Source of the DNA: Macrostomum lignano
Taxonomy: Eukaryota
Reading direction: 5' to 3'
Length of the DNA: 64,000 bases
Assembly: GCA_002269645.1 (NCBI GenBank)
Contig: NIVC01001165.1
Location: forward strand, 282,261 to 346,260
Shown here: piece after piece, positions 4,150-33,500 of the stretch
How positions within the stretch are numbered: the first letter of the stretch is position 1
Layout of the letters: every line of letters begins with the position of its first letter
The notes under the pieces: generated by a model
What the model was told of the DNA's origin: nothing
Databases searched by the model: none
Seen by the model: only the letters and a program-made list of their open reading frames with translations
Translations under genes and position numbers: made by a program

Positions 4150-4755
4150 TCATCTCCTGGCTTTCTTAGACGCCAGGCTGCTGCCGCCAGCGCTGCCGCC
4201 GGCCACTGAGTCGCCAGCGTCGCTGCTGGGCGCCGGTGAGTGGCTCCGACTAGAGGGGGCCGCCTGCGGCGACGCAGTGCCACGGGGAGGTCGGCCGCGC
4301 TTCCTCGGCTGAACCGACGGCTCGGCGAGGGCGCCCGCAGGCGACGCGGAGCGGGCGGAGCCGGCAGCGGACAAGCCGAACACCCTTGGAAAGTCCATGG
4401 CTAGCACGGGTTTCCAATCCGGCGAATCAATTGGCAGAGAAAATTCAACGTCCTTGTTAGGGAAGGGTAGCACCTCGGAGTCGTGCAGGGCCGGCATGGA
4501 GTACAGGCCGTCCAGGAGGGTCCACACGGACCGGATGGACACCGGCGGGAGGCCGCGGTCCCGCTGCGCAGCGTTCAGCTTCTCGGTGATGTACAGCATC
4601 TGGAAGTGCCGGTCAACACCTACGGGTTTGTGGCCGCGGAGTGCCACGAACAAGTTCATCTCCTGCTCGATGGGCCAGGCCGGCTGCTGCTGTTGCTGCT
4701 TCTGCTTTTGAGCATCGGCTCCCGCAAGCGAACCCGAGCTGCTGCCTTTAGTCAT
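4150..4755 (-). CDS. MRGBP: MRG/MORF4L-binding protein (Eaf7 family, NuA4/TIP60 subunit), single exon
   Basis: WPIEQEMNLFVALRGHKPVGVDRHFQM and LYSMPALHDSEVLPFPN match the Eaf7/MRGBP signature (GHKPVG.NRHFHM; LHESEILPFPN). AT-hook-like RKRGRPPR in the tail. Confidence 0.92.
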   Translation of the reverse strand: MTKGSSSGSLAGADAQKQKQQQQQPAWPIEQEMNLFVALRGHKPVGVDRHFQMLYITEKLNAAQRDRGLPPVSIRSVWTLLDGLYSMPALHDSEVLPFPNKDVEFSLPIDSPDWKPVLAMDFPRVFGLSAAGSARSASPAGALAEPSVQPRKRGRPPRGTASPQAAPSSRSHSPAPSSDAGDSVAGGSAGGSSLASKKARR

Positions 4756-4879: not shown

Positions 4880-5790
4880 GAATGTGACTGTCTCAGCGTA
4901 CTACAGAGCGCACTGGGGTCAGTGATACGCAGTGCAGCATAGAAAAAGTCAGCCCCAGCATCCTCAGCTTCATCTGCCACAGCTAGGGAACGCCTCAGAC
5001 AGCTATTTGAGAATTTAACAAGCTGACTAGGAGCTGTTTGTGGACAAAAGAGATTTGCAAAAACAAAGACCATAGGAAAGCTATTGATTACAGCATTGGT
5101 GCCACACAAAATAAAAGCCCCTAATTGACTGCGTACTAACCGTGATTAAGCTTGCTTAACCTACTTAAACAATAACGATATGATATTACTACTTTGATTC
5201 TAGGGCACTGGTAGTGAGAAACAAAAGTACATGTGGCTGTCTCAGCGTACTGCAGGGCGCACTGGGGTCAGTGATACGCAGAGCAGCATAGAAAAAGTCA
5301 GCCAAGCATCTTAAAGCTTCATCTGCCACAGCTAGGGAACGCCTCAGAGAGCCAATTTAACAATGCAGGCTGACTGGGAGCTGTTTGTGGTTAAATTATC
5401 ATTTAAAAAACAGAGCCGTAATTCTTTTAGGTTAATTTTTTTATACATATCGGTAGAATAAAAAAATTACAGCAAGCCTACCGATTCCATCGTTGGTGCC
5501 ACATAAATTAAAAGGCCCTATTTGACTACGTACTAACCGCGATTAGGCTTGCTTAACCTACTTAAACATAACGATATGATATTTATTACTTTTGATTTTA
5601 GGACACTGATATGAAGACACTAGAGTGCATGTGGCTGTCTCAGCGTACTGCAGGGCGCACTGGGGTCAGTGATACGCAGAGCAGCATAGAAAAAGTCAGC
5701 CCAGCATCCCCAGCTTCATCTGCCACAGCTAGGGAACGCCTCAGACAGCTATTTGAAATTCAGCTGACTGGGAGCTGTCCGTGGTATGCT
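4880..5790. repeat. Interspersed repeat family X, copies 3-5 in tandem
   Basis: Cores at ~4882, 5230 and 5628, separated by the CGTACTAACCGCGATTAGG spacer. Confidence 0.85.
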
Positions 5791-6588: not shown

Positions 6589-9500
6589 TCAGCCCAGCAC
6601 AGAGGCGGTGACGGCCACGCCCCGCTCAAAGAACTGCGTAGCCGTGTTTGGCTCCTCAGTGGGGAAGGTGAGGGTGAACAGCAGCTGAGCCCTGGTGGAG
6701 TTCAGGTACACAGGCAGACTGACTGAGCTCTCAGGCGGCGGCTTCTTGTAGGCCTCGTGCCTCACCCAGCAGATCTCGGTGCGGGCCAGCTCGCTGCTGA
6801 TGCTGTTCACCAGGCGGAGCTTGTTGTCGGCGCACTCGGCTCCCATGAGACGCAAGCCGTGCACCACGAAGGTGCTGGCATCGGGCGGCGGGCCGTCAGC
6901 AGCTGGACGGACCTTCACGTCCAAAGTGAGCTCCTCCAGGGCCCAGCGGTTGCTCTGGGCAACGGTCTGCCTGGTGGCGGTGATGTAGGCCTCGGGCATG
7001 AAGAGGCCGCCAAGCCACACGGGAGCCAAGCGAAGCGACTCAATGCCGCCCTTGGCAACCAGATCAGAGATTCGAGCCATCTGCCGGACCCGCTCGGCAA
7101 AGTCGGCAACCCACTGGATGGCGGTGAGCCCAGCTGGCACTGTGTACTTCTTCCAGCCAGCCGGTATGAGGCTCTTCTGCAGGTCCGCCATCATCTTGCG
7201 GTGATGATTTGTCGGCTTGCGCTCCGCCGCGCACACTGCCGCCACCTCGCTGAGATCTTTGCGCACCGCGGCAAGCAGGTTGGCAGCTGAGGTGACCTCG
7301 CGCTCGAAGCAGCGGAACAGCGGATCCTTGATGTTCTCGGCTGTGCGGGCCATGCGGCGCAGGTCCTTGGGCAGCTGGCCCAGCCAGTCATTGGCCTGGT
7401 TGCACAGCTGCCGCATCCAGGCCGGCCTGGCGTCGCCCGCGTTGCTGATAGTGCGCTGGCGACCGCTGACCACCAGGTCTTCGTCATCTTCAACGTGCTG
7501 CATCTGCATCACCTTGCCCAGCATCTCTTGGCCTGAGTTAAAAGGGGGAAGAAGAACACAAGACTGACATGGACTTTTGGTTTACTATTTTTGTTAGTAA
7601 AGTTTAAATTGGCGCAATAAATTTTTACCAGTAATTCAAATTCGCGCCAAAAATTACGCTGTCTGGATTTTTGTTTTACATTATAAAAAGGTGATAGCTA
7701 TATAGAGAGGAAAAAAACAAATATTGATTTATCAAGTTTTAAATTTAAAACAATTTTTGTTAAACTACTTGAGAAACTTTTTGGCGCGAATTCAAATTTT
7801 TGAAAAACAATGTTAAAACCAGAGGAAAAACTGCCTTCCAGTGTGTACATAGTATGTACAATTGCATTGATTTTTGACGAAAGAACTTGTACCGCACCTC
7901 AGAAGGAATATACGGAGAAAAACTGCATTACCTACCATGAAACTCCTTAAGAACTACAGAACATAGGATCGTATAAATATGGTAATGAGAGGAAAAACCG
8001 CTTCACCAGTCGAACTCCACCTTGAGTATAAATATATACAGGTGTTTTCATATTATCCCAAATAGACTGTGAATAAGACAGGAATGCGTGACTGTACCGC
8101 CTTCATCTTTCTCGTCCTCCTCCAGCAGGTCAAGTTTCAGCAAGTCTTTCACAAGTCGAGCCGCTGTACAGAACAAAATTCAATTCAATTCAAATTCAAA
8201 TTCAATTAGTGTAAGTGCGCATCTTGACAAAACTTAATTAAAATACAAAAAGGCGCATATTAAACAATAAAATGTGGCTGTCTCAGCGTACTGCAGGGCA
8301 CACTGGAGTCGGTGATACGCAGAGCAGCATAGAAAAAGTCAGCCCCAGCATCCTGAGCTTCATCTGCCACAGCTAGGGAACGCCTCAGAAAGCTACTTAA
8401 GAAGCTGACTGGGAGCTATACGTGGACAAATTCAAAGAGCTGATGATAGTTAAAAAGAGATTTAATAAATTTAAATTTGATTTTCGATACATATCCGCAG
8501 AATGAATAAATTGAAAAATAACAGCCCACCTACTGATTCTAGCGTTGGTGCAACTCAAATTAAAAGGCCTTGTCTGACTGCGTACTAACCGCGATTAGGT
8601 TGGCTTAACCTGCTTACAAAAACGATATGATACTTTATTTGATATGATAACTAATACTTTAATTTCAAGGGCACTGACATTGAGAAATCAGAGTGCATGT
8701 GGCTGTCTCAGCGTACTGCAGGGCGCACTGATGTCAATAATACGCAGAGCAGCATAGAAAAAGTCAGCCCAGCATCCTCAGCTTCATCTGCCACAGTTAG
8801 GGAACGCCTCAGACAGCCAATTTAACAATGCAGGCTACTGGGAGCTGTCTGTGGACCACATGGAATCTCATTCATTACACTTGGCTACTCACACTACTGC
8901 AGCTCAGTAGTATCTGAGACTGTGAGCGATCTGATCCCCAGCCCCACTAGCTACTCGCACTACTGCAGCTCAGTAGTATCTGAGACTCTGTGAGCCCCGC
9001 AGCGGACAGCCGCAGACACGCAGGCAGCGAGTCTCTGAGGCAAAAATGCCGCACAGGGCCGCCAACCGTCTGCCACAGAAGGAAAGCCTCGCTCGGCCAC
9101 TGGGCGGAGATGCTGCTGCCGCGGTGCCGGCCAGGGGCAAAATGTGGCCTAGCTTTTTGTTATTTTCAAGTTACAACTAAAAGAGCTTGAGCACGGGGAA
9201 GGGGGATCTAGAACACGGGAGTATGGGGATCTAGAACACGGGAGTATGGGGATCTAGAACACGGGAATATGGGGATCTAGAACACGTGAATATGGGGATC
9301 TAGAACACGGGAGTATGGGGATCTAGAACACGGGAGTATGGGGATCTAGAACACGGGAGTATGGGGATCTAGAACACGGGAGTATGGGGATCTAGAACAC
9401 GGGAGTATGGGGATCTACAACACGGGAATATGGGGATCTAGAACACGGGAATATGGGGATCTAGAACACGGGAATATGGGGATCTAGAACACGGGAGTAT

Positions 9501-12500
9501 GGGATCTAGAACACGGGAGTATGGGGATCTAGAACACGGGAGTATGGGGATCTAGAACACGGGAGTATGGGGATCTAGAACACGGGAGTATGGGGATCTA
9601 CAACACGGGAATATGGGGATCTAGAACACGGGAATATGGGGATCTAGAACACGGGAGTATGGGGATCTAGAACACGGGAGTATGGGGATCTAGAACACGG
9701 GAGTATGGGGATCTACAACACGGGAATATGGGGATCTAGAACACGGGAATATGGAGATCTAGAACACGGGAATATGGGGATCTAGAACACGGGAGTATGG
9801 GGATCTAGAACACGGGAGTATGGGGATCTAGAACACGGGAGTATGGGGATCTAGAACACGGGAGTATGGGGATCTAGAACACGGGAGTATGGGGATCTAG
9901 AACACGGGAATATGGGGATCTAGAACACGGGAATATGGGGATCTAGAACACGGGAGTATGGGGATCTAGAACACGGGAGTATGGGGATCTAGAACACGGG
10001 AGTATGGGGATCTAGAACACGGGAATATGGGGATCTAGAACACGGGAGTATGGGGATCTAGAACACGGGAGTATGGGGATCTAGAACACGGGAGTATGGG
10101 GATCTAGAACACGGGAGTATGGGGATCTAGAACACGGGAGTATGGGGATCTAGAACACGGGAGTATGGGGATCTACAACACGGGAATATGGGGATCTAGA
10201 ACACGGGAATATGGGGATCTAGAACACGGGAGTATGGGGATCTAGAACACGGGAGTATGGGGATCTAGAACACGGGAGTATGGGGATCTAGAACACGTGA
10301 ATATGGGGATCTAGAACACGGGAGTATGGGGATCTAGAACACGGGAGTATGGGGATCTACAACACGGGAATATGGGGATCTAGAACACGGGAGTATGGGG
10401 ATCTAGAACACGGGAGTATGGGGATCTAGAACACGGGAGTATGGGGATCTAGAACACGGGAGTATGGGGATCTAGAACACGGGAATATGGGGATCTAGAA
10501 CACGGGAATATGGGGATCTAGAACACGGGAGTATGGGGATCTAGAACACGGGAGTATGGGGATCTAGAACACGGGAGTATGGGGATCTACAACACGGGAA
10601 TATGGGGATCTAGAACACGGGAATATGGGGATCTAGAACACGGGAATATGGGGATCTAGAACACGGGAGTATGGGGATCTAGAACACGGGAATATGGGGA
10701 TCTAGAACACGGGAATATGGGGATCTAGAACACGGGAGTATGGGGATCTAGAACACGGGAGTATGGGGATCTAGAACACGGGAGTATGGGGATCTACAAC
10801 ACGGGAATATGGGGATCTAGAACACGGGAATATGGGGATCTAGAACACGGGAGTATGGGGATCTAGAACACGGGAGTATGGGGATCTAGAACACGGGAGT
10901 ATGGGGATCTACAACACGGGAATATGGGGATCTAGAACACGGGAATATGGGGATCTAGAACACGGGAGTATGAGGATCTAGAACACGGGAGTATGGGGAT
11001 CTAGAACACGGGAATATGGGGATCTAGAACACGTGAATATGGGGATCTAGAACACGGGAATATGGGGATCTAGAACACGGGAGTATGGGGATCTACAACA
11101 CGTTAATGGGTATCTAGTACAAACAAGGCCTCTATCACAAACAAAGACCTCATACGCCATCTTACCCAAGTTCCTCAATAGCACTTTCTCAGCATTATTC
11201 GGCAGTCCAAGCCAGGAAGGTGTCTGCGTATCCGGCAGCTTGTTGATCCAGGCGAAAATCTCGTTGCGCTTGGAGCCCTCAGGCGGCATGATGCGGCCGC
11301 CCTCAACCCCGTCGACGTGCTCCACAATGGGCCTGTCACCGTCAAAGCTAGCGGCGTCGAACAAAGACTCAAGGAACGTCTGCAACAGGCGGGCATCGAA
11401 GGCGTTATCAATTTTGCCGCCGTAGATGCACTGCGACATGAGGGTGCGCAGCGCGTCCCACGGGATCTTGTCTGGGGGCAGGTTGGCGCGGCCCATGGCG
11501 GCTCCGTCAACCCAGGTGTCAATGGTGTCGCAGGCGCATTTCAAATCCGACTCGTTGAACTCGTAGCGTTTGGCCCAGCCAAGCGGAGTGTAGCGGAGGC
11601 GCTCCTGTCAGATAGGGTGGAACCAATTGTCAGTTTAGATTGGGCTGTAGCGAATTCAACATTTTTATACTACTGCTAATTTGCCTTGGTTGGTGAGTCA
11701 AGAAGGACTAGCTGTGCGGGTCAAGGTGGTTAGAGCCCAGTGGGTCAAGGTGGTCAGTCTAGTGGGTCAATGTGATCAAGAGTCAGGTGGGTCAAGGTGG
11801 TCAGAGCCGTGGGTCAAGGTGGTCAGAGCCCAGTGGGTTGAGGTGGTCAGAGTGCAGTGGGTCAAGGTGGTTAGAGCGCAGTGGGTCAGGGCGGACAGAA
11901 TTCAGTGGGTCAGGTAGTCAGAGTCCAGTGGGTCAGGTAGTCAGAGTCCAGTGGGTCAGCTAGTCAGAGTCCAGTGGGTCAGGTGGTCAGGGTCCAGTGG
12001 GTCAGGTGGTCAGAGTCAGAAGAACAAAGAAACAGATAAGAGTAAAAAAACACCAAAAGCGACTCACCTGCACAACAGCGTGGAACCAGGCCAGCAGGAA
12101 GTACAGGCGACTTCTCTCGGCGGGTGCCTTGGACATCCGCTGCGGCGGTATGGCACTGAGGGTGCGCATCAGCGACGCCTTCAGGCCAGCGGGCGGCTCG
12201 AATACGAACACCCTGGCGGTGCGGATGATATTAGTAGGCAGCTTAGGCGAGATCTCAGCGGTGAGGAACAGCCGGAAATTGGGATGCGGCGCCAGCGTGT
12301 GCAGGCGTTTCTCCAGCTGGCCGAGCCAGGCCGGCGCCAGGTGTACATTCTTGAGCGCGATCCAGCCGCCAGTCTTGGCGCCGGAGTTGACGGCTTTCTC
12401 GGCCGCGCTGAAGCCTTCAGCGGAGCCGATGGCGATGCCAGTGAGCTGTTTGCCGCACTCGGAGGCCAGCTCCTCGACTCGGCCGGATGCGTCGTAGCCG

Positions 12501-15500
12501 GGCGGTGAGCAGATTAGCAGCGGAGTGGCCGAGGTCACCTCCTCCAGTACGGATTTGGCCAAGTCGCCGGCCAGGATTTGGCAGCTCTGGGGGAGAAAAT
12601 TAGGGATAAATATGAAAGATGGGACTCTGAGGCGACTCAAGTGACTCTGGGGCGACTCAAGTGACTCTGGGCGACTCAAGTGACTCTGGGGCGACTCAAG
12701 TGACTCATAGGCGACTCAAGTGACTCATAGGCGACTCAAAACTCTGAGGCGACTCAAGTGATCATATGCGACTTAACCAACTCTGTCTAACGACTAAGGA
12801 ATGGTCTAACGACTCTGAGGCGACTATCGGATAGTTCTATAACGATTGAGGCGTGATAGCGTCGCATTAGTCAGTGCATGTGGCTGTCTCAGCGTACTGC
12901 AGAGCGCACTGGGGTCAGTGATACGCAGAGCAGCATAGAAAAAGTCAGCCCAGCTTCCTTTAAGCTTTATCTGCCACAGCTAGGGAACGCCTCAGACAGC
13001 CAATTTAACAATGCAGGCTGACTGGGAGCTGTCTGTGGACTGTATGGAATCTCATTCAATACACTAGCTACTCACACTACTGCAGCTCAGTAGTATCTTA
13101 GTCTGTGACCCAAATGAGTGAGGGGCGACTCAGATGACTCCGGGGCGACTGAGTGTCAGTCGGATTGTTTTATAACGATTGAGGCGTGATAGCTTCGCAT
13201 TAGAGCCAGTCAGTGAGAGACGACTCTCGCAACTGCGCGTGAGCTTTAGTCAATTCTCTATTATACCAGTGTCGTAGACTTAAGTCAAACAAAAGTATTG
13301 CTACATGGTGGAGTGTCAATCAATGAAAACGCTATAATCCAGCGTAATCCAAACCTGCAGAAAGTCCTCGGACAGCAGAGCGGCAACGAAGTGATGTGCG
13401 GCAGCCAGCAGCCGATCTGGCCGGAAGGCCTGCACAAGCAGCAGGCTGTAGATGGCTTGGCCGCGCTCCTCCTCGGCAGCAGACGGAGCCTGCCAGAGTT
13501 TCGGCACGGAGATCTCCGGGCTGACCTGGTTAACCCAGGCTGAGAATTTGTCATTCTTAGCCACCAGACCGGGCAGGTTCTTGAAGCAGGCCAGCTCGGC
13601 CAGTTTGTTAGCCGCCTTGGCGGTGTCCAGCTCCTGGGCGCCGGTGACAATCTGGGACCGGAGGAAGTGCTGGAACTCGGCATCGAACGGAGTGCTGCTA
13701 GAGCGCAGGTAGATACGGGCGAGCAGCACCGCCAGGGAGATTTGGTCCTGGTTGTGCGAGAGAGGAAGAAAAACCATGTTTGCTCTTTACTACTTATCAT
13801 GACGTGGTGATTAATATATAAATCGTTTCCAGCGAAAGGGGAAGGAGTTATGCCAATTGAGCTGATAGCTGAACACGGTATGCTCTGCTAATAATACTGC
13901 TGTTACTGCTGCTACTATTGTACTACCACTACTACTACTACTACTACTGATAATGCTAAAACTACTACTACTACTACTGAAACTGCTAAAACTACTACTA
14001 CTACTACTGATAATGCTAAAACTACTACTACTACTACTGAAACTGCTAAAACTACTACTACTACTACTGATACTGCTAAAACTACTACTACTACTACTAC
14101 TGATACTGCTAAAACTACTACTACTACTACTGATACTACTAAAACTACTACTACTACTACTGATACTGCTAAAACTACTACTACTACTACTACTGATACT
14201 GCTAAAACTACTACTACTACTACTGATACTACTAAAACTACTACTACTACTACTGATACTGCTAAAACTACTACTACTACTACTACTGATACTGCTAAAA
14301 CTACTACTACTACTGATACTGCTAAAACTACTACTACTACTACTACTGATACTGCTAAAACTACTACTACTACTACTGATACTACTAAAACTACTACTAC
14401 TACTACTGATACTGCTAAAACTACTACTACTACTACTACTGATACTGCTAAAACTACTACTACTACTACTGATACTACTAAAACTACTACTACTACTACT
14501 GATACTGCTAAAACTACTACTACTACTACTACTGATACTGCTAAAACTACTACTACTACTGATACTACTAAAACTACTACTACTACTACTGATACTGCTA
14601 AAACTACTACTACTACTACTACTAATACTGCTAAAACTACTACTACTACTGATACTACTAAAACTACTACTACTACTACTGATACTACTAAAACTACTAC
14701 TACTACTACTGATACTACTAAAACTACTACTACTACTACTGATACTGCTAAAACTACTACTACTACTACTAATACTGCTAAAACTACTACTGATAATGCT
14801 AAAACTACTACTACTACTACTACTACGAGCTACTACTAGCTCACCTGCTGCAGCATGCCGCGGCCAACCCGGGTGAAGGTGACGCGGAACAGCGCACCGG
14901 TGATGACCTCCAGTCGTTTGGAAGGCTCCGTTAGGCCAGACAGGTCCTGCGTGTGCAGAGCGGCGTTAAACATTGACAGGAAGAACTGCAGAGAGTAGTG
15001 GTACAGCGAGTGCAGCTGGCTGAGTCCTTCCAGAGTGAAGAAGATAGCTGAGCAGCTCTGGGCCAGGGGCTGGTATTGCCGGCTGACGTTCTCCACCTCC
15101 TCCATCACCTGTGAAATTCAAAAAATGTTGTGAGTATAATTATAGAAAAGAACTTATTAAAGGCACTAACTCTGTTGCTGTAGCACCAATAGCCTCCCAG
15201 ATCCTCATTTCTGGGCCAGCCTCCCAGATCCTCAGTTGCTAGGCCACCAGCCTCTCAGATCCTTAGTTGCTGGGCCAGCCTCCCACATCCTTAGTTTCTG
15301 GGACAGCCTCCCAGATTCTCAGTTGCTGGGCCACCAGCCTCTCAGATCCCCAGTTGCTGGGCCACCAGCCTCTCAGATCCCCAGTTGCTGGGGCACCAGC
15401 CTCTCAGATCCCCAGTTGCTGGGCCACCAGCCCCTCAGATCCCCAGTTGCTGGGCCAGCCTCTCAGATCCCCAGTTGCTGGGCTCGAAATGCCGGTTGGC

Positions 15501-18500
15501 CTCACCTGGTCGGCCTCAGCAGCCTTAGCTGACACCTCGGCAGCCTCCTTCTTAAGCGTCTCCAGCTGGGTGATGATGGCATCATCGTTAAGAATGTTGC
15601 CCTGGGCGGCGCTGAGCGCCCTGAGCAGCTCCTGCTCGAGCTGGCGCAGCCTAGCCTGGAACTCGCCCTGCATGCGCAGCAGGTCGCCCCGTTTCTTGTC
15701 AACATCTGGCCGCTCAGCCTGCAGCACGGCATTGAGGCACTGGTTCTGCAGCGAGCTGCGCGTCACTGTGAAATTGACGAACGTGACGCGAGAGCACAGG
15801 TCCGGCGAGAAGTCCACGGACGGATCGCGGGTTGATAGGAAAATAGTGAAGGTTGGCGACAGGTCGATGTCCTGCGAAATTGGGTCGATTCATTGATTTA
15901 GACAGCTGCAGAAATATTTAGAAATGAAATTTTAAATACTCGCCTGGGTCAAGTTGGTTTAAGTAGATGGGTCAAGGGGGTCAAAGCTGATAGGTCAAGG
16001 ATGTCAAAGCCGGTGGATCAAGGTAGTCGAAGCTGATAGGTCAAGGAGGTCAAAGTCGGTGGGTCAAGGTAGTCAAACCTGATAGGTCAAGGAGGTCAAA
16101 GTCGGTGGGTCAAGGTAGTCAAACCTGATAGGTCAAGGAGGTCAAAGTCGGTGGGTCAAGGTAGTCAAAGTTGATAGGTCAAGGAGGTCAAAGTCGGTGG
16201 GTCAAGCTAGTCAAAGCTGATAGGTCAGGGAGGTCAAGGTAGTCACATTGGTCAGCGAGTCCTGGTGGATAGTGTACATGACCCGAGCATCATACCTGGT
16301 CTCCAAGCGTCATGAGGGTGCGGCCGCCGGTACGCCGGACCTCCCTATTGAGCACAGGATTGAGTATGGGATCGTAGCTCTCCACATCCTGCACAAGCAG
16401 AGGTGTGCCGAAACGCAGAGCGGATTCCAGTGTCTTGCGGAACGAATCATCAAGGAAGCTGGTCCGGGTGATCTTCTTGCCCTTGTACTCGTTGGTGATG
16501 AACTCGGTGGCCTGGCCAGACGGGTCAACGATGAGCGGGTAGCGGTTGAATCGCTTCAGAATGATTGCGTTCTCTGTGCACAGGTCGTCGGAAGGCAGAG
16601 CGTTTGACGTCCAGCGAAGCCGTTCGTCTGGGTTGGACAGGTACTGCGCAATGGGAGCGGTTGGGTTAATGAAATGAGTATTTTAAATTATACATACATC
16701 AACAGAGTTTTGAAACCATGAAGGTTTTCAGAGTTTCTAATAAAGATTTTGACCGCATTTTATTGGCATCTGTTGAGCCAACAATTGGTCCACTACTTTA
16801 TGGCATCATTTGGAGTTCGGCGAACTTGAACTGAAACTAATTAAAGAAAATTTGCTCCGTCTATGGGGATCTGGGATAAGCTGCCTAGTCTATGGGGATC
16901 TGGGATCTGGGAGAAGCTTCCCAGTCTATGGGGATCTGGGATCTGGGAGAATCTGCTCAGTCCATTGAAATCTAGGATCTGGGAGAAGCTGCCCAGTCTA
17001 TGGGGATCTGGGATCTGGGAGAATCTGCTCAGTCCATTGAAATCTAGGATCTGGGAGAAGCTGCCCAGTCTATGGGGATCTGGGATCTGGGAGAAGCTGC
17101 CCAGTCTATGGGGATCTGGGATCTGGGAGAAGCTGCCCAGTCTATGAGGATCTAGGATCTGGGAGAAGCTGCTGTCTATGGGGATCTGGGATCTGGGAGA
17201 AGCTGCCCAGTCTATGAGGATCTAGGATCTGGGAGAAGCTGCCCAGTCTATGAGGATCTAGGATCTGGGAGAAGCTGTCCAGTCTATGGAGATCTGGGAT
17301 CTGGGAGAAGCTGCAGATCTGGGAATTGGGAAGAATGTAAGTTGCTGAGGAGAATCAATAACAAGGTGCTCACCTCAACCCTAGCCAGGTCGCTCCTGTA
17401 CTTGATATTAGCCTGCTGCAGATGATGCGACCAAGTGGTGAACAGAGTAGTTCTCATGTGCTGATCAAAGTAGCCAGCATAGGCCATGAAAGCTGAGCTG
17501 ATCAGGCAGTCGCCAACAATAGTCTCCATCTGAGCTTTGAAAGCATCTGAGCCACTCTCCCAGCGTTTCTTCTCGTTGCTAAGCGAGGACAGCAGCGCAA
17601 CGGACCGGCTGACCTTGGCTTCAACCGAGGCCAGATCGGATTTGATAGCCTGAGCCTGGCTAATCAGAGCCGCGTATTCCTCTTTGTACTTGGCGATGCT
17701 TTTCTCCAGGCGGCTGATCTCGGCTTGGCATTCCTCAGCATTCCGCCTGTTGGATCCGGCCTCAACCTCCAGGGCTTTGAGCTCGGCACGGAGCGGCTCA
17801 ACCTTCTGCAGCATCTCGGCGTAGCTGATCTGGGCGATGGCCCACTTCACCATGGGGCCGCAGGCTATGCTGGCCCGGTTGACTTTCTCGAAGTTGTAGT
17901 CGGGATTGGACAGGTACTTCTTCTTCATGGTCTCGCGGATGGAGTCGCTGCATTTTGTAATTAAATTTTGCAGTTTTTTTGCTAAAGCGATTTGTCTTTC
18001 ATAACTTGAGAAAATGTGAAAGCAAAAGCATGTTGATCCTTGATCACCAATATAAAGATGGAGGTAATTAATTAAGCGAACCAGCTTAATCATAAAGACA
18101 ATGCCAGGTGTAGGAAAGATTTATATGCGATCGTACTACTGATTGGAATACTACTGATTGATATTGCGAATTTGGCGGCTAGCAAAGATTTTTTTCTTTA
18201 CGAAATTATAAATAAATTTATAGCCTAATCAACTTATACTACTTTTAGTAGCTTAGTACTGCTTGAGATGCAAAAATCCAGCTGAATACAATTACGAGAT
18301 AACTGTCGAGAATACCAGTATCTTGAACGCAAACATACTACTTAACAAGTTAAGTAGTTTTCAGATTTTTTATAAATCTTTCGAATCTTTACAGTGGTTT
18401 TTGAAATCGTAAAAATCGAAGTGCGTCACTTATTGACCCATAATAAATAGAATAAGGAAACTCGGCCACCTGTTTAACTATATAGAGGAGTTCGCTCTCT

Positions 18501-21500
18501 GATTGAACTTACGGCATCTCCAGTGTCTTATAATTAACAATACTTGGCACAAAGGTGTCTTTAACAATTACACCTTGAATCTGCTTCCAATCTGAGGACT
18601 TCTCTCCCAACAGTAGGCAGATGGATTCCACGGCCATTTTCACCGCCGTCGGCGGGTTCTTCATCGCTTTGATCTCCTGAATATCCTTCCGCTTGATGCC
18701 CTCAACGGCTGGTTAGCGGCGGATTTAAGGAAAGTATGGGGAGGGAGGGGCGAATCGGATTAGCAAAGCAACGAATTGAGCCGCTGACTCACCTGAGATC
18801 TTCAGTCTGATAATTGAGCAGCTGAGATATGAAATTGTCTCGCATTAGAATGGTTCGGATGGACTTCCAGTCTTGAGTAGGCTCGCCTAGCATGGTGCAC
18901 ACGGACTCCAGGGCCAGCTTCACTAGCGGTGGCGGGTTTGGCAGGCTGCGGACTTCCACCAGCTGCTGGCGGGTCACCGCGTTCACAGCTAGATAGCAGC
19001 GAAAGTAGTGCATAGCGGATGGGGAAGTTGCGGTAATGCCAGTGGTATGCATGGAGCTTGGCAGCGGTCGGTTCAGCCATCGAGTTTTATAATTATAAAA
19101 TTAAATTAAGTGAGCCAGAATACCAAGACTTCAGTAGTATGGTGAGTAAAATCCAACACCTGTTTCTAGTTGTACACTACAGATTCTAATTACATCCCAC
19201 ATCCCCAAACAGCACATACTAAATCCCAAACCGCACATCCCACATCCCAAACCGCATATCCCAAATCCCAAACTGCACATCCCACATCCCAAACCCCAAA
19301 GCGCACATCCCAAATCCAAAACCGCACACTCTAAATCCCAAATCGCTCATCCCAAATCCAAAACCGCACATCCCACACCCCAAACTGCACATCCCACGTC
19401 CCAAACCGCTCATCCCAAATCCAAAACCACACATCCCAAATCCAAAACCGCACATCCCACATCCCAACCCCATATTTCAAATTCCAAACAACACATCCTC
19501 AATCCTAAACCGCACATCCCAAGTCCTGAACCGCACATCCCACATCCCGAACCACACATCCCACATTCCGAACTAGAGATCTCATAATCATAACTGATAT
19601 GAAACAGTCGAATATTTGAGCAAGCAAAAACGAAAACAAAGCAACTCACCCTGCTTGGCCTCTGACACGGCTGGCTCCACCTGACTAAGCTCGGCCGTGA
19701 CCTCCTTGGTCTTCTCAGCGATGAAGATCTCTTTCTCGGCCAGACTCTTCTGCAGCATCTCGCCCTTCTTCTTGCTCTCCTCGGCCACCTGTTGATCATG
19801 CACCATCTGCTTCAGCTTCTGGTTGGCCTGCTCGTTCATTCGCTCCAGTTCGCTGCGCTTCTGACTGAGGGACGACTGCATCACCTCCACCTGTTCCACT
19901 GTCTCGCGTATTTTAGTCAAACCCTTGTTCAGATGCAGCTGCTGCTCTTCAAGGTCGGCCCGCTTCTCATTGGTCAGCTTCACGTAGTGATGAATGAAGT
20001 CCAAAAAGTGCCGCGGCGTGATGGCTGCCACTCTGCCGCCGCGCTTGGCAACCCGCTGGTTGGCCTGGTGCAGGGTCTGGTGCACGAACACGAAGGCGTT
20101 GTTGACCATCTCTCGGTGGTTGGGCCGCGATGGGAGGCCTTCCAGGGCCATCGGCGGGTAGTCCGGCACAGAGTAGTCCGCTTTGTCCAGGTCCACCCTC
20201 TCGGTAAACTCCTTGCCAACCTGTGCGAGGGTCAGCGATACGCATTGCGTGATTTATGAATAAAGGGTCACTAGAGCGAGATGCCCCTGGACTAGGGATC
20301 TGGTAACTGAAATAGGGATCTGGTCACACTGAAATGGGCATCTGGTCACTGAAATGGGGACCTGGTCACTGAAATATACGAATTCGGTCACTGAAATAGG
20401 AATCCGGTCACTGTAATAGAGGAATCTGGTCACTGAAATAGGAATCCGGTCACTGTAATAGAGGAATCCGGTCACTGTAATAGAGGAATCCGGTCACTGT
20501 AATAGAGGAATCTGGTCACTGAAATAGAGGAATCTGGTCATTGAAATATATGAATCTGGTCACTGAAATAGAGGAATCTGGTCACTGAAATAGAGGAATC
20601 TGGTCACTGAAATAGAGGAATCTGGTCATTGAAATATATGAATTTGGTCACTAAAATATAGGAATATGGTAACTAACATATAGGAATCTGGTCAATGAAA
20701 TAGAGGAATCTGGTCAATGAAATATACGAATCTGGTCACTGAAATAGAGGAATCTGGTCATTGAAATATATGAATTTGGTCACTAAAATATAGGAATATG
20801 GTAACTAACATATAGGAATCTGGTCAATGAAATAGAGGAATCTGGTCAATGAAATATACGAATCTGGTCACTGAAATATACGAATCTGGTCACTGAAATA
20901 TACGAATCTGGTCACTGAAATATAGGAATCTGGTCATTGAAATAGAGGAATCTGGTCATTGAAATATAGGAATCTGGTCACTGAAATATAGGAATCTGGT
21001 CTGGTCACTGAAATAGAGGAATCTGGTCATTGAAATATAGGAATTTGGTCACTAAAATATAGGAATCTGGTCACTGAAATATAGGAATCTGGTCACTAAA
21101 ATATAGGAATCTGGTCACTGAAATGGGGATCTGGTCACTGAAATGGGGATCTGGTCACTGAAATAGGGATCTGGTCACTGAAATGGGGATCTGGTCACTG
21201 AAATAGGGATCTTGTCACTGACAGGGATCTGATCACTGAAACGATAACCTAGGATCACTGTAATTGGTATTTTGGTACAGAAGTGATGGACAAGACAAAA
21301 TCAATTACCTGGAAGTAGGCCTCAAGCGACCAGTCGCCAAACCAGTTGAGCACACACCGATTGAACAGAGCAGGAGACGTGGACGCCCTGTCCTTCAGGC
21401 CGTCAGAGCTGGGATTCATAGTGAACACAACGTGCAGATTGCGGCAAATCTGCTGAGTGAACCAGCGGTACAGCTCCTCGTGCGAGTCCAGCATCAGGCC

Positions 21501-24500
21501 GTCGCGGGCGGCGCCCTCTTTGCACTGAGTCATGAGCGTCTGGAACTCGTCACCTTCGAACAGACCGGGCACCTCGCCATTGGCCAGCAAGGTGTTCATC
21601 CGCTCCAAGAAGCTGCTGTCCTTCACATTGGACTCGTCCATGATGAAGGTGACTTTCTCGCCTTTGCAGCCGGTACGGCGCAGCACTGAGCGCAGATCTT
21701 CGTCGAAATCTTCGCCGGTGTATTTGTTGTGCACTTTCACCTGGGGATTGACAGGTGAAGTATTTTATAGGATTATCATCACTATAGTAATTCCTCTCGT
21801 TAATTAGCACCATAGCCCATAGGGAATCCCCTTAGTATAAGCAATATAGTAATTCCCCCATCCATCAGCACTATATAGTAATTCCCTGATCCATCAGCAC
21901 TATATAGTAATTCCCTGATCCATCAGCACTATATCGTAATTCCTCGATCCATCAGCACTATATAGTAATTCCCTGATCCATCAGCACTATATAGTAATTC
22001 CCTGATCCATCAGCACTATATAGTAATTCCCCCATCCATCAGCACTATATAGTAATTCCCTGATCCATCAGCACTATATAGTAATTCCCTGATCCATCAG
22101 CACTATATAGTAATTCCCTGATCCATCAGCACTATATAGTAATTCCCTGATCCATCAGCACTATATAGTAATTCCCTGATCCATCAGCACTATATAGTAA
22201 TTCCCTGATCCATCAGCACTATATAGTAATTCCCTGATCCATCAGCACTATATAGTAATTTCCTGATCCATCAGCACTATATAGTAATTCCCTGATCCAT
22301 CAGCACTATATAGTAATTCCCTGATCCATCAGCACTATATAGTAATTCCCTGATCCATCAGCACTATATAGTAATTCCCTGATCCATCAGCACTATATAG
22401 TAATTCCCCGATCCATCAGCACTATATAGTAATTCTCCAATTCATCAACACTAGAGAAATTCCCTCACAGCAGTGAGCAGACCTCTCACCTGGAACACGG
22501 ACAGCCCGTTAATCCAGCTGACAAAGCGGGACAGGGTGGTCTTGCCAGCACCGCTAACTCCAATCAGCAGCAGGTGACCCTGCGGCTGGCGGAACACCCG
22601 GTCAATGCGCAGCACGTGCTCAAGCACCTGGTTGAACAGCACCAGCGGCACGTCGAGCTCCTCCTCGTAGAAGACCTTCAGTCTGGCGCGGACATAGTCG
22701 CGCAGAGGCTCCCGTTCAACGGGTCCGTACTCTTTGGTGAGCCAATTGCTGAATAGGATTGGACGGCGGAGGGCCTCTTGCTTGTTGATGCCCGGGAAGT
22801 GCTTGTCGGCCACCTGGGGGGAGGTGAAAAGGTGACAGTATTTACATTCGAAATTCTGGCCATTGATGCAAATATTTAGGGCAACTTAAAGTGCATATCA
22901 CGTGACCATCTAGAGTGCCTATCACGTGACTATCTAAAGTGCCTATCTCGTGACTATTTAAAGTAACTGTCACGTGACTATCTAAAGTGCCTATCTCGTG
23001 ACCATTTAAAGTAACTGTCACGTGACTATCCAAAAGTGACCTTATCACGTGACCATCTAAAGTGATTCTATCATGTGACTATCCAAAGCAACTATCACAT
23101 AACAATCACGAATCAAAAGCGACCAAGATAATGTGACAACATACTCTAAAATAACTAGACTGCCATCACCTAAACGCATTGTTTCACAGACTTAATCATG
23201 CTCCAACCGCAAACGCACCTGGTCAATAGTGTCATCAGTCCATTTCCTTTCGCCATCTTCCACCAGACGATCTTGGAACAGTCGCAATGCCTCGTGCGCC
23301 CAGATTCTAACCAGGCCTTCAATTGGTAGCGAGTCCACCTGAGTCAGGGCCTCGTGAATGCCGCGCACCCAGCGAGTCATCTCGCGCGGACTGTACACAT
23401 AGTGCGGCTGCTGGTCCACTGTGAATCGCTCCTGCGACATCAGGAAGAAGTCAACCATGGCGTTGGTGATGGGATCGGCGTAGGGGCGCAGCGGAGGCAG
23501 CTGGCGCAGCATGGCCCGGTTGAACGAGCCGTAGATCTGAGTCAGCGAGGTGCGTCCGGGATAGTCAACGTAGACTAGCGGCACGTGGCGCATGAACCGA
23601 GCTGACAGCGGCTTGCGGCCCGGATCGGTTGGCGGGTTGCAGGCGCCGACAAACTGCACCCGTTCGAGCGTCACCCACTGCAGATCGCCGGGAGTGCACC
23701 GATGAAAGCCGCCGTGCTCAACCATCTGGCGGATGAAAGAAATGACGCGTTGAGTACCGTAGGAGTCCTCGTCTGGCAGGTTGATCTCGTCGCAGAAGAA
23801 CACGAGCCATTTGTTGAGCTGCTGCGGAGCCAGCACCAAACCGTTGGGCGTCTTCTTGTACTCGCAGTACTGATCGAACGATTTCAACAGCAGCTCTGGC
23901 GTGGTAGCGCTGGAGAAGTTCAGACCGACAACTTCCATGTCGGGCAGAGAGCGCAGAGCGGCGAACAGGGTCATGGTCTTGCCGGAGCCGGGCGGGCCGC
24001 ACAGCAACACAGGCCGGTGCTCGGCCAGCCAGCCGCTCAGCAGGCACTCGTGTCTAACAGTGTCCAGAGTCGGTATGACCACATCAGTAGCAGTGATCTT
24101 GTGCGATTCAACCTCCATCTGCGGCACCTTGTTACCCCAAGGCGCCCATTCGCCCTGGATGGTGACCTCATAGTCGATGATTGGCGAGTTGCCGGGCGGC
24201 AGCGGGATGGTGCTCACTCCGCGAATGAATTCGCCAAGCTGTTCGCGGATTTTCAGCTTGCCATCGCCGGACATGGCCCACAGCACTGACACAACGATAG
24301 TCTTGCTGGCGTACAGCTCGATCTGCTCGTCAGACATGGGGAAGTCCGGATGCGAGGCATTGTAAGCGATGACATTCCTGGCGCTCTGGTTGAGCATGGA
24401 GAACAGAGAGGACAGGGCGCGCATCCGGCTGAAGTCCATAATGTGGTCCAGCTTGGCGGCCTCGTCAAGGCAGCGAATCACGATGCCGTCCGACTGCAGC

Positions 24501-27500
24501 TGCGCCTCCCAGACGGCCGCCAGCTTTCGCTGCACGTCCAGCACGGAGCCTTCGTCGGACTCGTCAACCGGGACATTGCGCAGCGACCTCAAGTAGTTGT
24601 GCATCACCATGGTGGTTGTGAGCACTTCGTCGGAGAACCAGACCATGCCGCAGCGGGACACGGTGGCCAGGGTGGCGTACTTCAGGTCCTGCACTTCGAA
24701 CATGATTCGAACATTCGGTGGAATGCCCAGACGCTCGCCATTGGGCAGGGTGAGCAGCTTGTTGTCGTCCAGCACAGAGTTGAGATTCTCCACCCATTCG
24801 GGGTCCACATCGCCGTCGAAGATGATCCACTGACGCTTTCCGGCCTCGCCGCGAAGGCTGTCGACAATCTTGCGGAGAGTGTGGGTGAAGATACCGTCAA
24901 ACCATTCGCGCGTGTTCGGGTCCATGAAGCCGTACAGGTTGTCCTTGCTGATGGATTTCGGATCGATGACGTGAGCAACGCCTTCGATGCCTTCCAGACG
25001 TTCGAGCGCTTTGAGCAGCACTCGCCAGGCCTTGGTCTTGCCGGAGCCGCTGGGACCAACCAGCATCAGGCCGTGCTGGATATTGGTGATCTGGTACACC
25101 TGCAGCACTTTCTCTACCCAGCGTTCGCCTTCGTCGCCGGACTCGCCGTAGACCAGGTGCATCTCTTCGCACACCTTGCGAATTTCGGCACGCAAAGCGG
25201 ACATCTCGGCTGGCACATACTCGATGCCAGGGAACACGTCAGATAGCAAGGAGAACAGCAGGGGAATGTCCTCGGCAACCAGCTTGGGCACCATTGTCTC
25301 CATCAGCGATTGGATAAGAATCTCCTGTTCGGGCAGTCGCGAGGCCACATCGGCTTCGTTATAATCGTCGCCTGCGGAGGCTTTGATCTGCTGGATTCGG
25401 TCGCGCTTCACATTGCCAGCGCTAGTGAGCACGCTCTTCAATGCGCGCAGACCGAAGTCGTAGTGACTCTGGGCGGAGAGCTGCTCGGCGCACAGTTTGA
25501 AAAATGGCACCACCTTGGCGGCGAGCTTCTCTGCGGTGCGGAAGCCTTGTGAGTACAGCATGACCTGAGCAATGAGCTGCCTGTCAGGCTGAGTCATGGC
25601 CAGGGAGCGGAACAGCTTCTTCAGATTGTCCGGCAGATTTGACCGACCAGCGTAGCCGGGATTCATGGTGATGAACACGGCCATGTCCTGGTGCACCAGA
25701 ACTTCGCGGCCAAGGAGCTCAGCTTTAGGCTTCACACTGCTATCACCTGTAAGGTATTCGCGCAGCGCCATCTGGATGCCCTGGATCTGCTGGGACACGG
25801 CCGACAGCATGCGCTCCTCCAACCGGTTGAACTCGTCGAAGCAGCCCCAGGCGCCCACCTGGCACAGGCCGACAAAGATGCGGCCCATAGCCTGAAAGTC
25901 GAAGGTCTCATCGCAGTTGAAGACCAACACGAAACGGCCCAGCTGATTGCCCAGCGCCTTGACCGATTCCGTCTTTCCTGTGCCGGCAGGACCGAATGGC
26001 GAGCCGCCGAGACGGCCTTCGAGCGCCTGCGTCATGGTGAGGTAGCAACGATCGGTGAGCGGCGTCTGCACCAGGCGCTCGGCCACGCCCAGATACTCGA
26101 AGCCGTAGTTGAAGCTTGCATTGGCAATGCGAATAATCAGCTGCTTGAGCGGATCTGTCTGCTTAGGATCGAAGTAGAATCGCATCTGGGCCAGCCACTC
26201 GAACGACTTGTTGGAGCCAATCTTGTCGGTAATGAGCTGACGGGTGACGTCTCTCTGGTGAACGTACTCAATAATAAGCTGCTCGAGTTTCTTTCTACGC
26301 ACAGGCGGTTGTTCCTTGAGCACGGAGTCGGCTAGCAGATTGAGAGTGCCTTCAACAGACTTGAGCACATCCTCAAGCGGCGCCATATCCGGGTCACCTT
26401 TGGCGCCAGCTTTGTCAATCGATGCAAGAGCAGCCTCGACGCTCTCGGACCAGATGACCTGAGCAGCCAGGATCACCAGCTGAGCCTGATAAGTGTCCGC
26501 CCACTCCATGAACTTTTCATCGCGATTCTCTGAACTAGCGGTTACATCTTTGAGTCCGAGAGTGGCTTTAGCCAGCAGCTTAGCTAGGGTTACGCGCATC
26601 TCCTTCTCAACCATTGTTAGCCAATCGTTAATCCGTGGATTATCCTTGATTGAGACCGGCGTTACAAACGGCACCTCTTCGCCCTCTTTGGAGCACAAGC
26701 CAAACACTGTGGTGGCTTCCTCGTCCAGCTTGAGCGTGTGCACTCCGGCGAACATCTTCTTGAAGTGCTTCTGCAGCCGGTGGACATTCTTGCTGTTGCC
26801 GATAATCTCCAGCAGATCTTCGTCGCCAACGAAGTAAAATCTGGCAAATGAGGCTCGCTGGCGCTCAAGGTATTCGCCAAGGGATTTCTGGATTTTAGCC
26901 AGCAGATCGGCCAGTCTCTCCAGCTGCTTTTGAGCATTCGGTATGTTGAGCACATCCATAATCAATGGCGACTTGGCAACCTTCTTCATTAGGCCTAAGA
27001 ATTCTGAGCTGACGCTGGCGAAGCGCTGCGACTCAACTGGTAGCAGAGTTTTGATATCGGCAGAGCCGGAGAAGATGCCCTCGAGGTACACCCAGCGGCG
27101 CTGCACATCGATCCAGCAGTCGAACAGAGCGTTGATGCGGTTCAATCGGTCCTCCCAGGCTAGGGCTTCCTCTTCGAACTGTTTAAAGTATGGCGACAGT
27201 TTCATAGCGTTCAGACTGGCCATGTGCTCCTTGACCTTGCTGAACAGATCGTCCCAGCCGCGGATGAGGCGGCACTTGTTCTGGAAGCTGACCAGCTCGA
27301 GCTCGTAGCCTTTCCAAGTTCGGTTACCTGGCGCAGGAATTCTTCGAGGGCCTTCTCGCCCTGAGCAACGGCTAGTACATCGCGAATGACAGTCTCATTC
27401 CTCTGCAGGTCAAGATCCCACAGCTGGCCGAGTGACAGGTCATTCATGTTCCAAGAGACGCCAAGCTGCTTCTGCAGAGTTTTCCAATGACGCTCCTTCA

Positions 27501-30500: not shown

Positions 30501-33500
30501 AGTCTTTGCAAGAATCACAAGCTAAGTATAGAAAATGACTCTAGTCTACCCAATAAAACGAGTTATCAGGTTACAAATCGCCTGTAACAGTTACCTAGTT
30601 GTCAATTTGGAACATGTGTATTGTCTGCGACTGTGAAACTACTCTAACAGGGGTGCTTCTATAATGACCCTGGGGCCGTATAGTTGTACGAGTATCTGAT
30701 AAGGCCCGCTAGAGTCGCTGAAGAATCACCGAGTTGCTAACCGATTTGTTTATTTGGTCTACTTGAGTTAGTAGAAAGTTAAGCGCTAACTCTTGTGCCA
30801 CCTTTTTCGCAATTCTTTTATGACTCCACAGCTCACGTGATGCTGTCGTGACTCCACAGTCGCCCCAGAGTCGGTAGTGCTTGGTGTGCAATGACTCTTT
30901 AGCAATTCTTGTCACAGTAACCTTACTCAATGAGATATGAGTCATTGCCTAAATAAAGCATCATAAGATATATAATCAAACACACCTGTCTCAGCTGTTC
31001 ATGCTGATGCCGGAACTTGCGCATCTGATCCAACCTAGTCTGCAGCCGCTTATGCGCAGGATTAATACGCCACACAGTCTTCATCATCTCTTCGCGCTTC
31101 TTCTTAACCAAATCTCGCAGCAGGCCTTGCAGCTTGTCGTATTCGTCATCCCAAGACGTGAACACGTCGAAGCAGGCGGTCATGATCTCTTCGAATTCGT
31201 CGTGTTGAATGTGCATCAGGCGTCGCGTGCCGAGCACTTTGAGCAGCTGGTTGCTCAGATCGCGCGAGATGGCTTCGATGAGACGGAGAGCGCGCTGTAT
31301 CGGATACTTGGTTGATCGGATCTTCTTCAGGTGGCCGAAGATGGCAACCACAGCCTGCTTGATCTTGTCCAGCTCAGTAGCTGACAGCAGCTCATTCAAC
31401 GGGAAATCCTTCATCAGCGGATTGTAATCGTTGACAACGCCCAGAGCCGACTTCAGGCCGGTGTCGGAGTCAAACGACACGGTGGCATGGAATCGCTTGG
31501 CATGCTTGAGAATGTCAAGAGTGAGCGTCACCTCGATGCTCTCCCGTTTCTCTTGGATTTTAAATAGGGCGCGCTCCAGATTGAGCCAGAAGCTGATCTC
31601 CTGCAGGGCATTGCCGGAGGCTGGGTCGCGGTCCAGCTTGGTCACCTGTTGATGATAGATCGATTGATTTAAAATATAACTAGTAAGATTTAAATGCAAA
31701 TTTAACAAAAAACGTAAAAAACTCGAATGCTTACTAAAAGTAGGATAGACGCATATCTAGGTAGAAAAACTATTTTTATGGAAGCATTGCTTTTGTATGA
31801 GTTGAAAATACAAGTACGTAGGCGTAATTTTGAACGCATACAGAAAAAATACAGAAAAAACACACAGCATAAAAATGTATTCAACTTTGCCAAAGTTTGC
31901 AAAGATTCTGAATGACCAAAATTTCAACAAAATTATAACTTAAGTTATGGCTTCAAATCCTGGTTTCTTTGTATGTTGATTTCCATGTTATTTTTCATAG
32001 TTCATATTTGATCATCATATCAGATACAAATGCTTAAAACAACGAACAAAATATGTACCATATAAAAATATAGCACGTAGTATTACAAGTGACTGCATAT
32101 GCATAAAAGTACACAGTTAGCAGACTGCAGACGCGCACTTGAGACGCTAAAGTATTACATGGCGCCATTCCGCTTGCAGCACACAATATGCCCTGTGCAC
32201 AGCTTTGCTCAGCCTAGCTGTAGTTAATAATCGATATTGGGTGCCGTCTGCAATCGTTTTTCTTTCTGTTTCGATTTCCTTTCTACTCAGAAATCCAGGG
32301 TAAGGGTAAGGGGCTACCCGAGGACCTGAGTGGCAGAAAACTTTAAACACCTGCGGGCACGGGGATTTGCGTGGACTAGGCTACAGGACTAAGTGGGGGT
32401 TGAGCGGAGATCAATGCAAATATTGCATTGGCATGACTACACTACTGAATGGCAAAAGTCAGAGCTAACAGTACCAGAGCAAATTATTTTGCATGAACCT
32501 CATACCTTAAACTGGAGTTATAGATTACAGAATTTTTGACAATTGATAAAGAAATATTTGATACTGTACATAAGATACAAATTACGAAAGACAAAAAATA
32601 GACATTAAGTAGCAGGGGCGTCGCTAAAAAGCAATGGGAGGAGGCAGGACAATGCTAGGTCTCCTCCACCCTACCATGTGACTCGTAGTTGAAATAAATA
32701 ATTTTATTTCAGGGCGCTAAAATATAGCACCTGCGGCGCTAAAATAAGTGCCTGCGGCGCTAAAATGAGTGCCTGCGGCGCTAGAATGAGTGCCTTCAGA
32801 GCTAGAATGAGTGCCTGCGGCGCTAAAATGAGTGCCTGCGGAGCTAGAATGAGTGCCTGCGGCGCTAGAATGAGTGCCTGCGGAGCTAGAATGAGTGCCT
32901 GCGGCGCTAAAATGAGTGCCTGCGGCGCTAAAATGAGTGCCTGCGGCGCTAAAATGAGTGCCTGCGGCGCTAAAATGAGTGCCTGCAGCGCTAAAATGAG
33001 TGCCTGCGGAGCTAGAATGAGTGCCTGCGGCGCTAAAATGAGTGCCTGCGGCGCTAGAATGAGTGCCTGCGGCGCTAAAATGAGTGCCTGCGGCGCTAAA
33101 ATGAGTGCCTGCGGCGCTAAAATGAGTGCCTGCGGCGCTAAAATGAGTGCCTGCAGCGCTAGAATGAGTGCCTGCGGCGCTAAAATGAGTGCCTGTGGCG
33201 CTAGAATGAGTGCCTGCGGCGCTAGAATGAGTGCCTGCGGCGACAAAATGAGTGCCTGCAGCGCTAAAATGAGTGCCTGCGGCGCTAAAATGAGTGCCTG
33301 CAGCGCTAGAATGAGTGCCTGCGGCGCTAAAATGAGTGCCTGCAGCGCTAGAATGAGTGCCTGCGGCGCTAAAATGAGTGCCTGCGGCGCTAAAATGAGT
33401 GCCTGCAGCGCTAAAATGAGTGCCTGCGGCGCTAAAATGAGTGCCTGCGGCGCTAAAATGAGTGCCTGCAGCGCTAGAATGAGTGCCTGCGGCGCTAAAA

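Follow-up and report, generated by a model that had tools for sequence, protein, structure and literature searches.

The stretch of Macrostomum lignano DNA analyzed here, 64,000 nt on contig NIVC01001165.1 (assembly GCA_002269645.1, positions 282,261 to 346,260) and called the window below, carries on its minus strand a gene for the heavy chain of cytoplasmic dynein-1. Two adjacent exons of this gene, A at 18793-18988 and B at 18513-18708, are both 196 nt long and both encode the same part of the motor's microtubule-binding domain (MTBD); we consider it probable that they form a conserved mutually exclusive pair from which two variants of the dynein-1 MTBD are made. Such a pair would have arisen when a single 196-nt exon of a flatworm dynein-1 heavy chain gene was duplicated in tandem long ago, and both copies would since have been maintained as alternative, mutually exclusive exons; transcripts that contain both copies or neither run into early stops and are presumably lost by nonsense-mediated decay (NMD). 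The gene would then yield two dynein-1 motors, identical except at the microtubule interface and in the element, formed by the end of stalk coiled coil 1 (CC1) and helix 1 (H1), that couples binding to the registry of the stalk.

The identity of the gene follows from its domain order and its nearest matches. When the long minus-strand open reading frames (ORFs) were scanned, Pfam domains appeared in the order DHC_N1, DHC_N2, AAA_6, AAA_5, AAA_lid, AAA_7, DYN_lid, AAA_8, MT and Dynein_C, which is the full heavy-chain order of tail, linker, AAA1-AAA4, stalk/MTBD, AAA5-6 and C-terminal domain. By this order and by collinear tblastn matches, the mapped part of the gene spans 6589-31456, with N-terminal exons further upstream; the exons from about 31456 to 6589 are collinear with the dynein-1 genes of the nematode Soboliphyme baturini and of the closest relative that we found (locus L001, on a metagenome contig from ENA, with about 77% identity in the motor). 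With either exon in place, the MTBD region matches mouse and human dynein-1 structures at E values of 1e-56 to 1e-58, compared with 1e-17 to 1e-19 for dynein-2 structures and 1e-16 or weaker for axonemal dyneins. Judged by these comparisons, the gene is the cytoplasmic dynein-1 heavy chain, the orthologue of DYNC1H1, as an earlier note on this DNA, made from the letters alone, had proposed. That note had also assumed a flatworm context, and two trees agree with it. In a neighbor-joining tree of the 1343-residue segment from the linker to AAA3, the window groups with the cestode Dibothriocephalus latus and the trematode Paragonimus kellicotti at 99% bootstrap, in a cluster that also holds two environmental or SRA-derived sequences, and a second tree, of the stalk region, recovers the same flatworm group with 70% support. 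The best homologue of the 1343-codon ORF in the searched protein collections is 75% identical.

Read on the minus strand, the pair lies between two constant exons. The upstream one (19650-20220) encodes the end of AAA4 and stalk CC1 and ends in phase 1 at a donor at 19650 (AGCAGG|GTGAGT), so that its last base is the first base of an Ala codon. It is followed by an intron of 661 nt (18989-19649), exon A, an intron of 84 nt (18709-18792), exon B, an intron of 565 nt (17948-18512), and the downstream constant exon (17374-17947), which encodes MTBD helices H5 and H6 and stalk CC2. This last exon starts in phase 2 (tgcAG|CGACTC), contributing the last base of a split codon, and ends at the donor GAG|GTGAGC at 17374/17373. 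The acceptors are ...tatctAG|CTGTG for exon A and ...taaccAG|CCGTT for exon B, and the donors are CAG|GTGAGT and GCC|GTAAGT, respectively. Thus, the two exons are adjacent, equal in length, flanked by AG and GT, and equal in phase at both ends (1 and 2), which is the geometry that the earlier note had described.

We translated the four possible splice products. Joining the upstream exon through A alone, or through B alone, to the downstream exon gives an open dynein frame, and including both copies or skipping both leads to stops within a few codons, in keeping with the frame shift claimed from the letters. Since 196 nt does not fill a whole number of codons, exactly one copy per transcript is required. 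The two peptides align without gaps at 25 of 66 residues, the count reported earlier, and at 100 of 196 nucleotides; not one of 100,000 shuffles reached 25 identities (the maximum was 16), and tblastn aligns A with B at an E value of about 1e-18. No third copy of the exon was found by tblastn within the window. The pair shows each of the features tested from Pillmann et al. 2011, namely the same length, the same phases, homology, and incompatibility of joint inclusion or joint skipping with the protein. These results support the view that A and B are real homologous alternatives for one structural segment.

Comparison loci other than L001 were found by searches with B-type sequences, after which the contigs were fetched, and 15 exon copies were compared. 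All 15 are 196 nt long with AG/GT boundaries and identical phases. L001 has both exons in the same order as the window; its A orthologue is 65% identical to exon A and 48% to exon B, and its B orthologue is 73% identical to exon B and 38% to exon A. Two more loci from the flatworm grouping (L005-7 and L008) also carry an A and a B exon, so that with L001 the pair is found in three flatworm lineages besides that of the window. In an exon tree, bootstrap support is 99% for a clade of the flatworm B exons and 53% for a grouping of the A exons. Because exons of one type from different species group together, the duplication is older than the divergence of those lineages.

Both copies have changed slowly at the protein level. 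B orthologues from L001, L005, L008, L003, L014 and L015 are 66-77% identical in protein, with a proportion of non-synonymous differences (pN) of 0.13-0.24, and the corresponding pN for A orthologues is 0.14-0.32. Synonymous sites are saturated between lineages (proportion of synonymous differences, pS, 0.7-1.0, and 0.79-1.0 among B orthologues). The earlier note had proposed that constraint on exon B be examined across related flatworms and had named stops or frameshifts in its orthologues as a sign against the idea; what we find in relatives are B exons of 196 nt that are open and bounded by AG and GT, with low non-synonymous against saturated synonymous change. These proportions show purifying selection on both A and B, with B at least as constrained as A. 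Codon bias (GC3), taken as a sign of expression, showed no difference between A and B that was consistent across species.

Some loci have only one copy. At L003, L004 and L014, and at the fragment L015, only a B-type exon lies between equivalent flanking exons, and the 98-222-nt introns of these B-only loci hold no remnant of A. The B-only loci are closest to the cestode reference, at about 85% identity; against the window, L001 and the trematode the figure is 74-80%. The most economical interpretation is loss of exon A in a tapeworm-like lineage, where the B type alone would serve all dynein-1 functions, a reciprocal natural experiment in which a lineage survives on the B type. Because the lineage closest to tapeworms has B only, the B type provides a fully competent domain, and the idea of B as merely a specialized variant does not hold up. 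Both forms are functional MTBDs.

The same loss gives some footing to the alternative that survives best, namely that M. lignano uses only one exon, the other being a relic that still looks intact but is about to be lost, as exon A was in the tapeworm-like lineage. One copy has, after all, already been lost at least once. However, both exons in the window are open, of exact length and bounded by consensus splice sites, and both types are under strong constraint where synonymous sites are saturated. With both exons intact and constrained, an exon could have become a relic only very recently, and we regard this explanation as unlikely. Under the preferred reading, a mutually exclusive pair at work in the dynein-1 gene, we infer from the sequence that M. 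lignano uses both exons and that the choice between them is mutually exclusive and regulated.

Next, we consider what the swap would change in the protein. AlphaFold2 models together with the alignment place the last turn of CC1 and helices H1, H2, H3 and H4 in the alternative exon and H5, H6 and CC2 in the constant downstream exon. The earlier note had spoken of an exchange of the MTBD; this is right for the CC1 end and H1-H4, whereas H5, H6 (a main microtubule contact) and CC2 stay constant in the models. Both variants are predicted to fold as CC1-H1..H6-CC2 with the same helix layout (pLDDT 89.7 and 91.1), and the top structural matches of both models are dynein-1 stalk/MTBD entries. On the free mouse stalk/MTBD crystals 5AYH and 3WUQ, the B-variant model (m0d661aac6ee9) superposes at a TM score of 0.96 and 1.1-1.2 A and the A-variant model (me761f1436f8e) at 0.78-0.79 and 3.5-3.6 A, and on microtubule-bound dynein chains the two models score alike (B 0.76-0.82, A 0.76-0.83). 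The gap on the free stalk could hint at a different preferred position of CC1/H1 or could be noise from a shallow alignment.

At nine sites, numbered as in mouse by alignment, all A exons differ consistently from all B exons. A-type and canonical sequences have Q or A at 3300, Q or H at 3301, L at 3302 and V at 3303, where B-type sequences have K or R, D, I and Q. The other sites are 3309 (G, P or T in A-type and A in mouse; K or R in B-type), 3317 (L; M), 3337 (R; L or Q), 3342 (R; K) and 3344 (N; D, S or T). The B signature thus clusters in H1 and at the CC1/H1 junction, plus one H3 arginine. CC1/H1 is the sole part of the MTBD that moves upon microtubule binding, and K3299 adjoins D427 of beta-tubulin (PMC6629372); in H3, the basic residues that correspond to 3334 and 3342 make salt bridges to beta-tubulin (PMC7042235). 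Residues 3298/3299 and 3342 are basic in both exon types, and 3334 is basic in all copies except the B exon of L005, where it is N.

Net charge does not carry the difference. The values given in the earlier note, -1 for A and +2 for B, are correct for this species, and B is also the more basic exon in L001 (+1, against -1 for A). In five other flatworm loci, however, B has a net charge of -1, which falls within the A range of -2 to 0. We therefore rejected net charge as the functional A/B difference because it is not conserved across flatworm loci, and the argument that its basic charge sets the direction in which B's affinity is shifted is unsupported. A functional difference is nevertheless plausible, and the two forms may differ in affinity, processivity or tubulin preference.

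How could splicing of A to B be prevented? In the window, the only well-placed branch-site match in the A-B intron is gCTAAT, with the branch A at about 18760, 33 nt from the exon A donor and 51 nt from the exon B acceptor, followed by a C/T-rich tract. The A-B intron of L001 is 69 nt long and has a TACTAAC motif 28 nt from the donor and 41 nt from the exon B acceptor, then a pyrimidine-rich tract. Exons 2 and 3 of alpha-tropomyosin represent the steric-interference type of mutual exclusion, and the window and L001 resemble them in that the predicted branch site of the second exon lies near the donor of the first exon and far from its own acceptor. A short A-B intron with a close branch site may thus block A-to-B splicing in these two genes. 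As for the other known types, incompatibility between U2 and U12 splice sites was ruled out since all four donors are of the U2 type (GTGAGT or GTAAGT).

Several observations weigh against a working mutually exclusive pair and are taken together here. The first concerns exclusion itself: A-B introns in the other relatives are 234-291 nt long and lack the steric-type layout, so that steric interference is not the general mechanism; the pair departs from the alpha-tropomyosin type in that the layout is not conserved in relatives and in that the branch points here are predicted from motifs only. Pairing of docking and selector RNA elements (the Dscam and 14-3-3xi type) fares no better. Inverted repeats are present in the window, where 17952-17992 pairs with 18753-18772 and with 18270-18300. 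The window duplex energies are no better than those of shuffles, and none of the candidates recurs in L001, L005 or L012. No A- or B-type exon joined to its flanks was found in the searched protein collections, in which all B-type matches are genomic ORF fragments. The conserved A/B differences, moreover, give no predicted direction for a change in microtubule affinity. Finally, the DHC_N2 coding region contains an apparent 1-nt frameshift (27309-27321, minus strand), reading GAA CT- TGG AAA where orthologues have E-V-W-K, and if this break at about 27.31 kb were real, this copy of the gene would be non-functional.

The frameshift is also what speaks for an alternative in which the present copy is a pseudogene, or redundant as a paralogue, with the exon pair a fossil at this locus that perhaps works elsewhere in the genome. 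We think this very improbable: the remaining mapped coding exons are all open, with ORFs that run for 1343 and 970 codons without interruption, and the break looks like a miscount of a TTT homopolymer as TT, which is typical of assembly error and is its probable origin.

Hardly more likely is an explanation by dosage control, in which regulated, frame-shifted A+B or skipped transcripts that are removed by NMD would tune the amount of dynein and the differing protein sequences of A and B would be incidental. In its favor, double inclusion and double skipping are out of frame in every species compared, all copies being 196 nt long except for one nematode copy of 199 nt, and NMD is expected to remove such transcripts. 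It leaves unexplained, however, why the B-type signature at H1/CC1 and H3 has been conserved over the long term. Least credible of all is the view of exon B as a dead pseudo-exon, left by the duplication and never included in transcripts, since, even though automated annotation often ignores such exons and the exonic donor context of exon B is slightly weaker (GCC|GTAAGT), B orthologues keep 66-77% protein identity across saturated synonymous sites, B is the sole exon in one lineage, and modeling of the B variant gives a normal MTBD.

Outside flatworms, too, tandem copies of the exon with the same boundaries are found. In the clade I nematode Soboliphyme baturini (L016, UZAM01007919.1), copies of 196 and 199 nt lie 221 nt apart (23176-23373 and 23595-23795). 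In the deposited GenBank protein of this species (P0128), the two copies follow one another, almost certainly because an alternative exon pair was overlooked in annotation; the practical point is that gene predictors mishandle such a pair. L012, from a non-flatworm metazoan that falls outside the flatworm group in the stalk tree, has two 196-nt copies (4555-4750 and 5008-5203), as does L013, and the second copy of L012 is B-like (KKKD, VKM, KDSFVP) and groups with flatworm B at 65% bootstrap. P0262, a protein in the same 90% cluster as L012, is present on 833 assembled contigs, which marks the host as an organism that has been sequenced heavily. The metagenome contig L009, also from a non-flatworm metazoan, carries 196-nt tandem copies at 160-355 and 446-641. 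It is possible, although we would not yet bet on it, that the CC1 end and H1-H4 are a recurrent tuning module in animal evolution, that the A/B split predates the flatworm radiation and perhaps reaches wider, and that several invertebrate phyla make two mechanically distinct dynein-1 motors from a single gene by altering the CC1/H1 element that couples binding to stalk registry. If true, this would contradict the usual view of a single dynein-1 heavy-chain isoform whose diversity comes only from adaptors and accessory chains.

Other features of the window can be listed briefly. Nearly every dynein intron has its own minisatellite array, with units of 20-36 nt that differ from array to array and up to 83 copies. 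The arrays lie at 9202-11102, 11718-12017, 12623-12773, 13931-14834, 15191-15483, 15947-16237, 16866-17314, 19192-19563, 20293-21241, 21844-22453, 22887-23088 and 32713-34096. That at 19192-19563, in the intron upstream of exon A, has a 21-nt tandem unit rich in G triplets on the sense strand. Several of the arrays give long spurious ORFs (for example, 32717-34108), and a self-tblastx search for other duplicated exons in the gene returned output dominated by these intronic minisatellites. Further along the window, an apparently recently inserted Polinton/Maverick-like element of about 8.9 kb (36367-45226) has near-perfect inverted repeats at its termini, each about 1.3 kb long (36367-37700 and 43950-45226, 97-100% complementary), and, on the plus strand, an ORF for a protein-primed type-B DNA polymerase (40469-42382, Pfam DNA_pol_B_2). 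The pol ORFs of an element of the LTR (long terminal repeat) type, also on the plus strand (58405-61423), encode aspartyl protease, reverse transcriptase, RNase H and integrase, and a long (GAGAG)n tract (55638-56704) lies upstream of them. An Rfam scan of the window returned no match.

Cytoplasmic dynein-1 is generally regarded as one motor whose jobs are specified by adaptors and not by heavy-chain isoforms. Exchange of H1-H4 and the CC1 end would be a change built into the motor itself, acting both on the tubulin contact and on the binding signal sent to the stalk, with possible effects on track affinity, processivity, force response and the preference for tubulin isotypes or modifications. 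The system lends itself to testing: schistosomes, planarians and macrostomids have RNAi and cell atlases, and A and B provide naturally occurring chimeras for motility work in vitro.

A mutually exclusive exon in a flatworm dynein heavy chain gene is already known and predicted in a related species, as the earlier note had indicated. Pillmann et al. 2011 (PMC3228551) used as a WebScipio test case the Schistosoma mansoni gene SmDHC1, in which two adjacent, strongly homologous exons are equal in length, have split codons at either end, and were judged mutually exclusive by alignment with other dynein heavy chains (DHCs). Kollmar 2016 (PMC5100056), where alternative splicing in the motor domain is noted for some DHC genes, mentions the SmDHC1 case again. 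The likeness to the pair described here is close, as both are adjacent homologous exons of equal length in a flatworm dynein-1 gene with split codons at both ends, and by this likeness the SmDHC1 pair is very probably orthologous to it. The SmDHC1 paper differs in giving no coordinates, encoded content, age of the pair or flatworms with a single type, and its supplementary files make no mention of the dynein example. Beyond these two papers, we found no other account of an alternatively spliced dynein-1 MTBD in the searched literature, against which the H1-H4 content of the exons, the ancient conservation of both types, the B-only tapeworm-like lineage and the pairs in other phyla appear undescribed.

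Two further systems offer comparison. Like the mutually exclusive exon clusters of arthropod muscle myosin heavy chain (Mhc; PMC3228551), the dynein-1 pair would let a single motor gene exchange homologous exons of its motor domain to tune mechanochemistry. The arthropod Mhc genes, however, belong to another motor superfamily and have several clusters with many alternatives, backed by transcript and functional evidence, whereas here there is one cluster of two exons, read from genome sequence. Like the dynein paralogues (DNAH7 compared with dynein-1; Lacey et al. 2019, PMC6629372), in which changes to the MTBD helices alter engagement with the lattice, the pair varies this same domain, but the diversity among paralogues is spread over separate genes, while in M. 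lignano it would be held in alternative exons of a single dynein-1 gene.

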